In this document: one piece after another, positions 5,662 to 60,822 of the stretch
Numbering within the stretch: the first letter of the stretch is position 1
Layout: each line of letters opens with the position of its first letter
Assembly (NCBI GenBank): GCA_001643675.2
Contig: LSRY02000013.1
Location: 124,001 to 188,000 of the forward strand
DNA length: 64,000 nt
Source: Monocercomonoides exilis PA203
Lineage: Eukaryota > Protista > Preaxostyla
Direction of reading: 5' to 3'
Made by a program: the position numbers and the translations under genes
The notes under the pieces: model-generated
What the model saw: only the letters and a program-made list of their open reading frames with translations
Told to the model about the DNA's origin: nothing
Databases searched by the model: none

Positions 5662-6286
5662 TTCTGATCTTACCCATTGCTTTTTAATTTTCTTGATGAA
5701 TTGAAAAAACACAATATTTGTCGTTTAATGAATTTTGTTCCTCGCAAAATGTTCGAAAAAATTTTCTCTTTAAAAAATTTCATAATTATTATTTTGTCTG
5801 AAAATGAATGACTTTTTTTAATTAGATGGAAAAATAAAAATTGATACAGATCTTTGTTTGAAAAACCTTTACGCAAGAATAATTCCCAATTACTTTTATA
5901 ATTAATTTTATTTCCGTTTTCAAAACGTTGATCTGCATTATCCGCAAAAAGAAGAAACGGAGCATCCATAAAAAATATTGAATTCACATTCATTTATTTT
6001 GAATAAATTCATTTCGAAGCATTGTTTATTTAATGAATATTGAAAATTGAAAAATAAATATCGACATTATTTTATTTCATTTCATTGGAGCAATAACCGT
6101 GTTCAATTCATTTTGTATTTTTTTAAGATGAAACAAAAGTGTGGTATAATCAATAAGATAATCACAGCATAAGATATGGAATATTTTGTAGTTGCATTGA
6201 TGCATTTGTAAGAAAGATCTTTGGACAATCCAATCGTTTCTGACCAAATCAGTCAATGAATCAAAATATTAAAAAAAGGAAAAAGA

Positions 6287-51878: not shown

Positions 51879-54018
51879 TTCACAAGCATTCCAGAAGTCA
51901 CCACAGGAAATGGAGACATTTGATAATGATCCACATAATGTTGTTGCTTATGGCAGAGCTAATACTCCATTGGCTATTCCAGCTGCTTGTAGCGCCTCTT
52001 CCGTTCTTGAAAACGAATTCTGTTTGGAGAAAAAGCGAAAAACAGGCAGAGAGGTCAAATTTGTTCAGAATGAGTCAACTTCCAACAAAAATGATTTAAA
52101 CGAATTTACAACCTCGTCATTTGGTTCAGAAAAAAAGCCCAACTTTTCTTCAATGAATGCAAAGAGATCTTCAGATTGCAATGAAGACAATTGCGAAGGC
52201 TGCTCTCAAAGCCAAAGCAGCAGCAGCAGATACAAGCGCCTGAAGCCAATCACCATCTGCAAGACAGTCACAGTCATAGCGAGTGACGACGACATGATTG
52301 AGTTCAACGACATCGATGTTGCACTTCCAGAGCCAAAGAAGAGACGGAGGTATATGCGTGATATAGAGCCATCGTTGAGTGCAGCAGAAGAACGAGACAA
52401 ATCAAGCTGCAATGAATTAGAAATCGACGAAACGAAAATCCCTTTTCCGCTTCAACATTCAAAATCTCTTCCTCTCAAAAAGGAGTTCGTTTCGATGGAT
52501 TCATTGGATGCATATGGAAGTACACACAACAAATCTTCTTCTTCTGCTGCTGCTTCTGCTTCTTCTCTAAATCAACAGCAGCAGCACCAATCGCAGCTGG
52601 AATTGCAATCGAAAATGAACATATTGAAAATCAATCCAAATCAGACAACAACAACACCAAAAGAAGACAGTCGATTTGGTTGGAGCTCAAAGAATGCCAT
52701 TCTTCCTGTGGATGTGCCGTCGAGTGGGTGGATCGGCGTGTGCCAGTCAGAAATGCAGCGCATCCTGTCTGAAAGCCACGTGACACTGTCAAAAACAGAG
52801 CAGATGACCAATCGCGAGTGGTGGCTGCATCGTGAGGAGTTGGATAGAGATGTGGAGCTGCTGGCTGTTCTTCTATCAAGATGCCTCATACGTGGGGGAG
52901 TGGGAACAGGGTTGTTTGAAAGAGGAGAAACAAGCAGAGAAGAGAATAAAATGATTTATGATGAAAGTGAGGAACGAGAAAATAGAAAGGGCAAAACAGA
53001 TAAATGCAATAAAAAAAGCAAAATATATGAAGAAGAAGAAGAAGAAGACAAAGAAGAAGAGCTGAATTACACAAAAATTGACAATAATTCAGATCCTTTA
53101 GTGTTTCTATTCCTCTCACCAGATATGGAGAAGCTGCCGTGGGAGAGCACAAAGCAATTCTGCGACTGTTCTGTGATGCGAATGACAAGCATTGGCTTTT
53201 TATTCCTTCGAGAAGAAGAGAGAAAAGCATCAAGCTTATTGAAAGGCACAGAAACGGAAAGTGAGATAAATAAAGATAAATGCAGCGAAATTGATATTTG
53301 TGATTGCAAAAAAAGAACAATCGCTCAAACACCTATTTGCATTCTTGATGATGAAAGCTCCAATGAAATGATTAGCAAACATTTATCATCATCTTCTCTG
53401 TCTTCACCTTCGATCGAACATTCTTTGTTTTCTTCTCTTTCATCAGCTCCTCTTCGAGATGGTGTGGATGCTTCTTCAGTCTTCTTCTTGATCAATCCAG
53501 ATTGCACTTTGAGTCGTTTTGAGACCGAAATGTCTGAAATCATCCACAAACACACACAGTGGGAGAGTCTTGTTGGGCAGCCTCCTTCGAAAGACCTGGT
53601 GAAGCAAGAGCTGCTGGGGAAAGAGGTCTTTGTGTACTGTGGCCACGGAGCAGGAGAAGGTTACTATCCGTTCTCGCGCATTGTCAAACATTGCCGCACG
53701 CCGGCTGTGCTGCTGATGGGATGCAGCAGCGGGAAGCGGGACATTGACGGAGAGTGCTTTCCGAAGGGGGTGGTTGATGCATACCTTCACTCAGGCTGCC
53801 CAGCGGTTGTGTCTAACCTGTGGGACGTGACTGTGGCAGACGAGGCGAAGTTGGCATCGACCATTCTCAATCAATGGCTGCTGGGTGAGTCTGATGACAC
53901 TCACTCTGCAAATCTGCCTCTCCCTTTCGCAAAGGCAAGAGAGTCGCTGACGTTTCCTTATTTGAATGGAGCTGCTCTTGTGACGTATGGCGTGCCAATA
54001 CATTCAAAAAGGAAATGA
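47160..54018 (+). CDS. ESP1: Separase (peptidase C50); 5' end uncertain
   Basis: EWWLHREELD, LPWES, FLINPDCTL, YCGHGAG (catalytic His), LLMGCSSG (catalytic Cys), NLWDVT, YLNGAALVTYGVP; probable introns 47220-47280 and 47897-47977. Confidence 0.92.
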
Positions 54019-54312
54019 CAAACAAGATTTGAAATGAATTGTTAAATATTTTCTGTGTTATCATTCAGCTTTTTTATATTTTTATTTTTATTTTTATTTT
54101 TTTTCAATTATTTTTAAATCCAATTCGATTAACTTACAAATCACAAATAAAGTGAGAACTTTATTTTCTAATTTACTTCTGCCTGTTCTTTTTTCCCCTT
54201 TTATAAACACAAACTATCAACAAAAATAAACACTATCAACACAAAATTTGAATAAAAAATAACAAAAAAAGAAACACAAGTCTTAGACATTAAAGAAGTC
54301 AATTATGGCTTC

Positions 54313-57300
54313 TCAACGAATGCTGCTCTTCTCTGCATTGTTCGGCTCCAGTGCGAGAGAGATCGCCATAAACCGTTTTGTGGGGTGGGGATTCCAGTGG
54401 CGCATGATGAACGACTGAATTGGCCTGCTGAACGAATAATACGAAAAGTAGGAAGAGGAAGTCTGCGAAGTGCTGGCGGAGGAGGAGTTGGAAGAGGAAG
54501 GGATCGAATAGGGACTCTGATACTGCAAGAAGTCAGTGGCGATGTCGTACACACGCCGCAGGAAGTCTACGTTGATCATTCCATCAATTTTGGTGTCGTT
54601 CTCAAAAATGAGTGACATCTGCTGAAGATACGCAGCTGAAAGAGAAGAAATCGAAAAATTACACAAAACAAAATACAGAAATCGTTCGTCAATTTGAAAA
54701 ATATTGAAATTGCCAAAGAAAAGAAAGAGAACTGTTAAAATATGTGAAAGCAATTGAGCATACGGCTATTGATGTTTGAAAGCACATATGCATTTGAAAA
54801 AGAAATGTTGTAAAGCAATTTATTAACAGAATTATTTATCAATAATTGAAGCAAACAATGGAGGCACTATTGGAGGCTTGACTTGCTTGAGTCTGGCTTT
54901 TGCTACTTTGAAGTTGCCTGTTGGATTGACATAGCGACGATACTCATTGTACAGCTGAATGCAACAAATCATAAAAAAAACAGTCAGAGGAATGATAAAA
55001 GCGCGAAATATGAGCAACAAAGAATTGTAAGTTTCACAGAAATCATCAGAAAATTGAAAAGTCATTCCATTCTTTCAAAAGAGAACAAACTGCTGTCACT
55101 TTTTTCCCTATTCCTCCCCACGTGAACTTCAGCCTGGTGATTGGTGTGTCGCTAAGTGCACTGACAATCGCAAACAAGCCGTCGAAGTTGTTGAGCTCAA
55201 ACAGACACTGAATCACTTGAAGGAGATATCCAATCACCTATTAAAATATTCATATGAATAAAATGTTTTCAATAATTGCATTAATTTCACATAGAAAATG
55301 GAAACATCCAACAAAGTTAATAAAAAACGAATGAATAATCGCTATCACTCAATTTGAACGAGAGATAATCATACTGCTCGTCTGCTCTTCACAGTTGAGT
55401 TCTCATCGAGCACCATGTTCATCACAAGATTTGTCAGTCTTTTTGATGACAGATTGATTGCCCAGCGAGCATTCCGCGAGATGCTCTGCCCTTTCGGACT
55501 CTCAAACGCGTTGTGGAACAGCTCAAAGCGGTCGATTTTGCAGTATGCTTCGTACTGGAGCAGGGTGATCTGGATGGCGAGGTCTGACGGGGTGATGTCG
55601 AGCAGCGTGAGAGGAGCAGACGGAGAAGAAGAAGAAGAAGATGATGATGATGATGATGAAGATGTTGCGGCTGAAGTGATGGTGGAAGAGGCAGCAGGAA
55701 TAGGGGGATAAAGTGATGAGTGTGTGGTTGTTCTGGCTATCGAAGTGGGAGTTTGTGTCAATGAAAGTGCAGTGTTCATTGTAAACTCACCAGAACGAAT
55801 AAGCTAAAAATAAAAACAGCAGAGTAATATGATAAGGAGAAAAAATGTTACAAAAATGCCCAATAATATCATTTATGCCTCAAAAGAAGAAGAAGAAGAA
55901 GAAGGAAAGCACACAGTTGAAGGCAGAGTTACTGCTGTATCGTCGCGTGTCTTTGTCTGAAGACGCGAGTGATAAATGCGACGTGTTAGCGAAAAATTGG
56001 ACTGTGCAGCGGAAGAAGAGCTGCTGGAGCGAGAATAGTCGGAGAAGAAAGGCTGATAGGGATCTTCCCTCTCCAAAAGCGACAGACTGACAAGGCCAGC
56101 CGACTGCTTCGAAGTGATCTGTTTTGAAAAGAAAAAGAAAAAGAAAAGAAAAAAGAAAAAAGATATTGAAGCAGATTGATTCATTAATCGCAAATGGAAG
56201 TATTCAAAAGAGCAAACATTGGAGTCAACAATGGAGCGAATGTTAGCCGAAAGTGTTCGGTGGTTGAGTGACAGCTGTGTGTCGCAGAATTCGATCAGCT
56301 CTTCTACCAGATGACAATCAAGGAAATCTGAATAGGTAAATGAATGAATGAATGAATGAATGAATGCGCATTATGTTTAATGAAGACATAATACAACATC
56401 GCCAGAAATGCATTCACAGTGCAGCAATTCACAGACAAATAACTTTAATCGTCATAAAACAGAAAGCTTCCACACCTTTGAAATATCTACTCACCCAGTC
56501 TTTCAGCACATTCCCAACTTTTGTCTGCACCTTCGAGACAGAGTCAGCCGTCTGCTGCCCCATCGGCGCCCGAAAGCGGTCCATTAGTTTGTGCAGAAGC
56601 ACTTCTGGGGTTGTCACCGTGCGATACACAAACAGAAAGAACTTGGTGAATTGCATCTGCGAGGCGTCTGAGCGGTCTGGATTTGTCAGCTTTTCAATCA
56701 GTTTGTTCAACGTTGCCAGACGAATCTTCATAGGATCGTCTGAGGAAGGATCTTCGTACTGGAAAATGTTGAACAAAGAAAAACAATAAATTTAATAAAA
56801 ATTTTAAATATCATACTACAATATTCGTCGGACGATCAGGTCCTTCATTCCAAATTGAATCAGATATTTCTATTTTTTTTTTTTTTTTAATTTTAATTAG
56901 TCACATAAAACTAAAGCATGTTTTCATATTATAATTTTTCAGCAAACCGTCGTCAAGTTTAATCAATCCTATCTTAAGGAGATGTTCTTTGACCCTTTCA
57001 ATATCAACCTCACCCTTGGGAGTTATCATTGTATGAATTGATGAAGTTTGACCCAGTGCCCCCCCAACAATAACAGTTAGCAAAGGAACTGCATCGTCAT
57101 TGGTCCCGCTTGTTGAATTTCGATCATCGTTTGAAAATCCTGGTTGTTCAATAAATTTCAATCTATTACTCCCAAAAAAACTTCCGCCAGAAGAGGTAGA
57201 ATTAGAAGCCTGAGCAGAAAAAGGCGATGCCCCTGGGATTGTCCAACTCTCTAGTGCGGATTGTCGTTGTAAGAGTGAAAGTTCCTCGCTGTTTTCTTCG

Positions 57301-57575
57301 TGTTCTTTTTCTGGAAATGATACTTGTGCTTCTTGTTCAAAGACTTGCAAAGTTGACGAATATCCTTCCAAATTTAAATATTGCATAATTAAATAAATCA
57401 TCAATTGTTTTGGAGGCTGTTGAACAGTAGCAGAAAATTGTTTATAAAACAATTTCGTGCGATAAACAGGCGAAACAAGTTGGTGAGACGAAAATAATTC
57501 TGGATGTCGTTGATAAGCCCTAAAAATCCAATCCGTTCGGTCTGGATGCTGTTCTAAGCTTTGCTGTTGAAACAT
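54313..57575 (-). CDS. LisH-REM-CDC25 Ras guanine-nucleotide exchange factor (10 exons, including a 2-nt microexon)
   Basis: LisH (LIMQYLNLEGYSSTLQVFEQEA), REM (ATLNKLIEKLT, FLFVYRTVTTPEVLLHKLMDRF), CDC25 (LAIQITL, ELNNFDGLFAIVSALSDTPITRLKFTW, PTGNFK, GMINVD). Confidence 0.9.
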
Positions 57576-58689
57576 TCAAAGTTTAAAAAAGCAAAAAATA
57601 ATTAAATTGTTTTGGAATATTTGATCAAGTATTTTTTGTTAATTTGAATTGGAAAGTTTTCACATATGAAAAGAAAAGGAAATGAGGTGAAGCGAATGAA
57701 TATGAAAAAACGGAAAATAAAAAATAAAATACAATTTTTTCTGAATAAAGACTCCATCTTTTTCTTTCATCCATTACATCGTTGATTCTGAGAATATTTC
57801 AATGAGTGACTATAAATCTATTTCTTTCCTTTTCTTTACCCTTCAAAATCAATGTTGAAGATCAATGAAATTCCAAAATTACAGAATTTGAAAGACTTGT
57901 TTCAATAAATCTTTTTCATTCTTTGATTCCACAAACAACGATATTTTATATCCTTCTCCTCTTCAATCCCTTTTCAATTTATAAAAATTGCCTTCATTGT
58001 GATTTTTTCCCCTCCTCTTTTTTCCATTTCAATCTCTTACTCCAAAAAAAATTCTCCCTGTGAACAGAATCTATCAGACATTTCTCGTTCAAATTTAATA
58101 ACCCAAATATAATCTTGGACAAAACCCGGAAATTTCTAACAAAAGTCGAAAAAAAGAAAAAGAAAATTATCAAATTTGATATTAGTAATCACATGCATAT
58201 TTCAATTGTTTAGCAATAATTCAATAAAAATATGATTAAAAAACAGAATTTGATTTATATATTTCTCTTTTACACAAGGATCAATAAACCATAACATATC
58301 CAGTTTTCTTTAATATGTCTTCTTTTCCTTCTTCAACAGCTCTTTCCAAAATTTTTGCAATAGATGAGAATCGAAGACTAGATTTAAAAGTTGAAAAAAT
58401 AAACTTTCTTCTATCAAAAGAAGAAATTTCGCACAAAAGCATTGTTTGTTCAGGGTCAGTTTCTTCTTCGGCTTTATATCGACATATCTCTTCTTAAAAG
58501 CAGGGAAGAGATCCTCAACACAATGGTAGACTGAATATGTTCACAAAGAAGAACAAGAAGAAATTGAAGGATGTGCAAAAACACTTTTGCTTTCGATGAA
58601 CAAAATAACATTTAAAGATGTCGTCAGTATTGTTTCGTATATTTGAGAATATTTTTTTTTGACTCAATTAAATTTATATTTTGAAGCCA

Positions 58690-59938: not shown

Positions 59939-60822
59939 AAAAGAAAGAAGGTTTCAGAATCTGCTTGGGGAAGACAGTTTGACATTAACTAAGTTGCATT
60001 TCTATTTTCGAGGAACAAAACCTTTAAATAACCGATTTATATATTTTCGTTTTTGATTCATAAATAACAAATGCCAAACGCTTCAGTAAATGAATCTATT
60101 CACACCATAGTGATAAAAATAGAAAAGAATTCAATCATTAACCACTTCAATAGAAATTGTTTTTCCTTTTTTGTTTTTTTTTTTTTTTTCTTATGGACGT
60201 GAATAACAAATTCAACAAACAAACAAAAAATCGAATTTGAAGAAATCGAAAACTGCGGGCTATGCTTCCGTGCTTTGTCCTTTTCCAGGGTTTTGTCCAT
60301 GACCATATTATAAAACAAGTCCATCCAATCTTTCAAAAAGGATAAAACATCTAACTTTTTTGCCCACAATCTGCATGAACACAATTTCCATTCTGTTTCA
60401 ATTGGCTAGCCAAAAATTTCTCGAATAACTCATTCATTGACATTGAAAAAATAAATACGCATTTAGATCTGTAGGCTCTTTCTTTATAATTAGAAAAACA
60501 ATATTAAAACTTCGTACAATTTGTTCAAATCTTTATTCAATAAAACAAGAATTTCATAAAAAACAAGGATCGTTTAGTGTGAGTTTGATAATCTGAAAAA
60601 TATTGTGAAACAGATGAAAAAACGCAAAGCATTTAACAAAAATAACACGACGCCACATGTGGAAGGTTGCAGAAAAAATTCAAAAGAAAGATAAAAATAA
60701 CAGATTAAAAAGCATTTTGACGTGCGAGAAGGAATTATGAAATGATATGATGATGTAATGCTCCGCAAAAAATGTTCTCGATTTTTAATTTAGACAATAA
60801 ACACAACATTAAGTCAATATTT

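Follow-up and report, generated by a model that had tools for sequence, protein, structure and literature searches.

How does a gene hold its reading frame when two neighboring coding exons do not fit together? The question arises near the 3' end of a LisH / RasGEF_N / RasGEF gene on the minus strand of the Monocercomonoides exilis DNA given above (coordinates are those of the window, the whole stretch of 64,000 nucleotides that was analyzed). The upstream exon of the pair ends in CCT CCA TT at 54857, where it adjoins GTTTGC, and the last exon begins at 54635 with CT GCG TAT, preceded by TTTCAG. Each of the flanking exons contributes 2 nt of the split codon, which is a phase conflict, and when 54857 is joined directly to 54635 the codons spell F C V S S A D V T H F ahead of a stop, hence 11 wrong codons. 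A preliminary description of this DNA had put forward the phase mismatch, the flanking splice letters and the frameshifted direct join, and all three proved as claimed when checked on the minus strand.

The interval of 221 nt that separates the two exons is AT-rich (27% G+C) and contains a single CC and a single AG-NN-GT, which lie together at 54765-54764 as CAATAG-CC-GTATGC. The same description had placed CC between an acceptor and a donor so that the 221 nt fall into introns of 91 and 128 nt, and this was borne out by the sequence. We conclude that CC is very probably a true internal coding exon of 2 nt. The features of the interval are as follows.

54766..54856, minus strand: upstream intron, GTTTGC...CAATAG, 91 nt; its donor edge (54857/54856) is fixed by an RNA joint and its acceptor is placed by the position of CC.
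54764..54765, minus strand: the 2-nt microexon CC, flanked by AG and GTATGC; found in RNA contigs of four runs, as GG on the plus strand.
54636..54763, minus strand: downstream intron, GTATGC...TTTCAG, 128 nt; its acceptor edge (54636/54635) is fixed by an RNA joint and its donor is placed by the position of CC.

The first of the two nucleotides completes a phenylalanine codon (TT+C) and the second opens a proline codon (C+CT), such that the mature mRNA carries CCA TT-C C-CT GCG and encodes P F P A.

RNA joints and open reading frames together gave a gene model of 10 exons running from 57575 to 54313 on the minus strand, which corresponds to 178313-181575 of the contig, and comprising 758 codons with the stop. 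The phases are open exon by exon, and the total length of 2277 nt is a multiple of three only when the 2 nt are counted. The exons other than the microexon are listed below.

56948..57575, minus strand: exon 1, which carries a weak LisH motif and whose putative start ATG lies at 57575; RNA covers 56948-57414.
56869-56817, minus strand: exon 2, from RNA joints and matching RNA pieces.
56758-56476, minus strand: exon 3, carrying the RasGEF N-terminal (REM) motif, from RNA joints and pieces.
56327-56218, minus strand: exon 4, from RNA joints and pieces.
56118-55915, minus strand: exon 5, from RNA joints and pieces.
55375..55803, minus strand: exon 6, 429 nt, with a poly-serine tract and the start of the RasGEF domain; RNA pieces cover 55373-55610 and 55674-55803.
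55091..55237, minus strand: exon 7, 147 nt, the core of the RasGEF (CDC25) domain, from RNA joints and the Pfam match.
54857..54954, minus strand: exon 8, 98 nt, entered in phase 0 and left in phase 2, ending in K P P I V P P plus TT; both edges are RNA joints in four runs.
54313..54635, minus strand: last coding exon with the stop codon, 323 nt, entered in phase 1 and beginning with CT followed by A Y L Q Q M S L I F E; RNA pieces cover 54153-54635.

As the first 160 nt of exon 1, including the start codon, lie outside the contig coverage, the start codon was taken from the open frame. At the other end of the gene the 3' UTR extends to at least 54153. The poly-serine tract of exon 6 (about 14 serines, 55611-55673, minus strand) lies just ahead of the RasGEF domain and is a repeat that was skipped in the RNA comparison.

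Pfam was searched exon by exon. LisH (PF08513) scored 18.6 bits in exon 1, below its cut-off of 21.6. RasGEF_N (PF00618) scored 61.8 bits on 56477-56758, and hence the REM motif upstream of the RasGEF domain is present. The RasGEF domain itself (PF00617, cut-off 23.1) was matched by exon 6 with 28.7 bits (profile positions 1-66) and by exon 7 with 45.8 bits (positions 69-114). Exon 8 and the last exon, each searched alone, gave no Pfam RasGEF match, and thus the C-terminal third of the domain (profile positions of about 120-181) has no Pfam match by single exons; the head of the last exon aligns instead to the domain end of a paralogue, as described below.

The RNA used to examine the junction came from four runs of one study, a 2024 metatranscriptome of a 'synthetic metagenome', in the form of assembled contigs that were compared over 54000-57700. 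The four runs contained roughly half of the words sampled from the gene region, as expected for spliced mRNA. In each of the four runs one contig joins 54635 to 54857 and skips the 221 nt, the ends of which read CT..AC on the plus strand. At this joint all four contigs contain exactly two extra letters, GG on the plus strand and therefore CC on the gene strand. The contigs have a depth of 7-8 at the joint, the shorter side of the match is 80-98 letters long and the placement of the cut has zero ambiguity. Mature RNA thus holds junction letters that neither flanking exon supplies. No contig of the four runs contained the direct join or used other splice sites between 54857 and 54635, although contigs drop rare isoforms. 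Intron-retaining contigs were likewise not seen in the four runs, the low depth in intron bins being what exon edges that fall inside the bins would give. Over more than 2 kb of exon sequence the DNA and the RNA contigs showed no gaps and no differing letters. The RNA junction with the extra CC that had been predicted from the DNA was therefore present in contigs of all four runs with no direct join, and the indel in a flanking exon that had been named as an outcome that would overturn the reading was absent: as the flanking exons match the RNA without gaps or mismatches, no indel within them repairs the phase.

The letters seen in the RNA are present in the DNA of the interval, with a canonical acceptor before them and a canonical donor after them. 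We assign the source of CC to 54765-54764 because this is the sole CC and the sole AG-NN-GT of the interval and its donor matches the other donors of the gene. Those donors, eight in number and defined by RNA, are GTTTGC (three times), GTTTGT, GTGTGC, GTGTGG and GTATGA (twice); the microexon donor GTATGC fits the resulting pattern GT[A/G/T]TG and the microexon acceptor is YAG like all the others. The introns of the gene are 58-148 nt long, a range that includes both 91 and 128 nt, and an unsplit intron of 221 nt would be the longest of the gene. The mean intron length reported for M. exilis is 119 bp (PMC8767320). Exon positions that border the splice sites have no consensus in this gene and the branch-site motif YTRAY gave no consistent pattern in its introns. 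The splice-site information of the gene seems to be wholly intronic. Two introns on the minus strand, 56870-56947 and 56328-56475, have simple repeats just before the acceptor, one of them a run of 16 A residues before TAG and the other (ATTC)n of about 7 units.

How often would such a site occur by chance? The pattern AG-NN-GT[A/G/T]TG[C/T] was found 17 times in the 128 kb of strand made up by both strands of the window, versus 8.7 expected from shuffled sequences, and several of the 17 sites are ordinary exon ends. This corresponds to a density of about 0.03 per 221 nt of one strand, and restricting NN to CC gives about 1 in 1000. When the window was screened for further AG-N(1-6)-GT sites flanked by AT-rich sequence, two came up, both in non-coding AT-rich DNA, and were taken as chance. 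The G+C cut-off of this screen missed the true microexon, and the screen is not usable as a detector. Two YAG-N(5-6)-GTTTGA sites flanked by AT-rich sequence are present at 5850-5855 (plus strand) and 60578-60582 (plus strand); they have no coding context and are most likely due to chance.

Given the junction, we proceeded to ask what the two nucleotides do for the protein. CC sets the frame of the last 106 codons, among them the P-x-[IV]-P...Y-L...E motif region and the third conserved block of the CDC25 domain. The preliminary claim that CC is required for the catalytic domain holds to this extent, that is, as dependence of the C-terminal frame on the 2 nt. An intronless RasGEF paralogue of the same genome, L001 (182.9 bits), was used to judge the spacing. 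As BLASTP of the exon pieces against L001 was swamped by low-complexity proline and serine matches, ungapped scoring was used. The last exon aligns through its first 34 residues, with no gap, to the extreme end of the L001 domain with a score of 41 (shuffled sequences gave a mean of 7.6 and a maximum of 26), and the exon 8 tail K P P I V P P can be placed on K P P F L P F of L001. Exactly two L001 residues, F S, separate the two placements; the microexon model supplies F P at this spot and the F is common to both. Frame closure together with the two-residue gap in L001 indicates that the 2 nt bring the P-x-[IV]-P...Y-L...E block back into frame and give it the right spacing, as had been proposed for the CDC25 motif; the match to the conserved motif at the junction comes from this one paralogue alignment.

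Searches of the organism's own genome with DNA and protein queries returned only the locus itself, which is therefore single copy, and gave no close paralogue of the gene. Two protein-database searches with the last exon as query found no proteins. A six-frame search located RasGEF domains at nine other places in the genome, one of which (contig 36) is in two pieces (L009 and L010). These nine places have long open frames of 686 to 2535 amino acids with no stop inside the match. Only the gene described here has its RasGEF matches in short open frames (63 and 144 amino acids) that run through a stop.

Several other explanations of the junction can be set against a 2-nt exon. The only serious one is an assembly error in which the true genome reads CCATTCC-GT at the end of exon 8, or cag-CCCTGCG at the start of the last exon, and the Nanopore-based assembly lost the CC, leaving a single intron of 221 nt. 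Such a genome would yield the identical mRNA and by RNA alone would be indistinguishable from one with a microexon, and the M. exilis assembly paper admits that residual indels persisted after Nanopolish and Pilon (PMC8767320). However, the deletion would have to be of 2 nt and to fall exactly at a splice junction, and an unrelated but perfect AG-CC-GTATGC would have to be present around the only CC of the intron, a coincidence that by itself is about 1 in 1000. Moreover, DNA and RNA agree with neither gap nor mismatch over more than 2 kb of exons, the residual errors reported are mainly in homopolymers and multi-copy regions (PMC8767320) whereas this locus is single copy, and the intron so produced would be the longest of the gene. 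We therefore regard an assembly error as very unlikely. Still less likely is an origin of CC in RNA editing or insertion, splice-site slippage, another non-canonical splice or an artifact of contig assembly. The RNA is indeed known as contigs assembled from k-mers, but nothing more specific speaks for these possibilities, and the identical two letters appear in four separately assembled runs. As the letters beside the two exon edges are GT and AG, shifting the cuts cannot give CC. A templated CC with canonical sites is present 91 nt away, and the gene has no other RNA-DNA differences.

Splicing of the interval as one intron was examined by enumerating the GT-AG, GC-AG and AT-AC pairs. There were 57 pairs that preserve the frame; each of these costs the motif at least four residues or brings in intron-like sequence, and none is used in the RNA. 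A stwintron, in which an intron is nested within a splice site, would leave nothing in the mRNA and was rejected for this reason. The interval also differs from a recursive splicing site (a zero-nt exon) in that 2 nt are kept in the mRNA and the interval is short. A different matter is whether a real microexon might be regulated, with skipping serving as an off-switch that gives a truncated protein lacking a working exchange domain. Very small exons have a general tendency to be skipped. In this gene skipping would shift the frame and bring a stop after 11 codons, and the proneness of such exons to skipping has been discussed in the literature (PMC4674806). The direct join was found in none of the four runs, an observation that carries little weight either way, as contigs drop rare variants and the runs are from one study. 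We think regulation of this kind unlikely; the microexon looks constitutive in the four runs seen.

How might an exon of 2 nt be recognized? Given that the splice-site information seems intronic and that the introns are short, the natural reading is intron definition, in which each of the two short introns would be recognized separately. As a spliceosome cannot occupy an acceptor and a donor 2 nt apart at the same time, the introns would go one after the other. The two introns are thus likely removed sequentially, and the second removal would draw its exon context from the first ligation. A broader possibility is that exons of 6 nt or less form a whole constitutive class in M. exilis that the published annotation missed. 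If the splice sites of oxymonads are defined wholly within the intron, almost nothing would constrain the length of an exon. We put this forward tentatively and consider it rather doubtful.

Exons of such length have precedents. RT-PCR has demonstrated single-nucleotide exons in APC11 of Arabidopsis and, across land plants, in APC11 and VPS55 (PMC4674806, PMC8831610), a 1-nt exon of Fusarium CYP621A was confirmed in public RNA-seq data (PMC12940212), and exons of 2-5 bp in Arabidopsis, Drosophila and humans are cited in the latter paper from Volfovsky et al. 2003. In the literature searched we found no report of microexons in Monocercomonoides, genome papers included. The ultra-short exon is therefore a known phenomenon, and the oxymonad RasGEF example is from a lineage without an earlier description.

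The RasGEF exon resembles those of plant APC11 and VPS55 in being an ultra-short internal coding exon that lies between short canonical GT-AG introns and is needed for the frame, and the plant papers report that annotation misses such exons (PMC4674806, PMC8831610). The authors of the Arabidopsis APC11 work proposed intron definition with successive intron removal, the same model as that given here (PMC4674806). Unlike the plant 1-nt exons, the RasGEF exon has 2 nt, a metamonad host and a donor of the form GT[A/G/T]TG rather than the GTRAGT of plants. The plant exons are backed by conservation and by RT-PCR or reporter assays, whereas the RasGEF exon is known from RNA contigs and sequence. With Fusarium CYP621A it shares discovery through a phase mismatch in a conserved motif, a combined intron of more than usual length, confirmation in public RNA-seq data and a contribution to the coding of a motif residue; 20 orthologues conserve the Fusarium exon (PMC12940212) and the RasGEF exon is known from one genome.

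There is also a likeness to recursive splicing as PMC4674806 outlines it for Drosophila Ubx and long vertebrate genes, in that acceptor and donor are nearly back to back, the reactions are sequential and the splicing context is regenerated. In that outline recursive splicing retains nothing and serves the stepwise removal of very long introns, whereas the RasGEF interval measures only 221 nt and leaves 2 nt in the mRNA. The neural microexons of animals (3-27 nt, dependent on SRRM4/PRP-40) are similarly tiny exons that challenge exon definition (PMC8378409). However, those exons are mostly multiples of three, alternative and dependent on tissue-specific enhancer proteins (PMC8378409), whereas the RasGEF exon shifts the frame if skipped and looks constitutive.

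The finding means that an exon of 2 nt is within the capability of the spliceosome in a deeply divergent eukaryote, a metamonad that lacks mitochondria. It adds this lineage to the plants, fungi and animals in which the phenomenon is documented and introduces no new kind of mechanism. Gene models of this genome that ignore such exons become frameshifted or truncated, and in this case the end of the catalytic domain of a signaling enzyme would be lost. A phase mismatch across an unusually long intron is a usable signal for finding further exons of this type. Should exons of 6 nt or less prove to be a whole class in M. exilis, this unicellular and culturable organism would be a simple natural system for the exon-independent and strictly ordered removal of neighboring introns.
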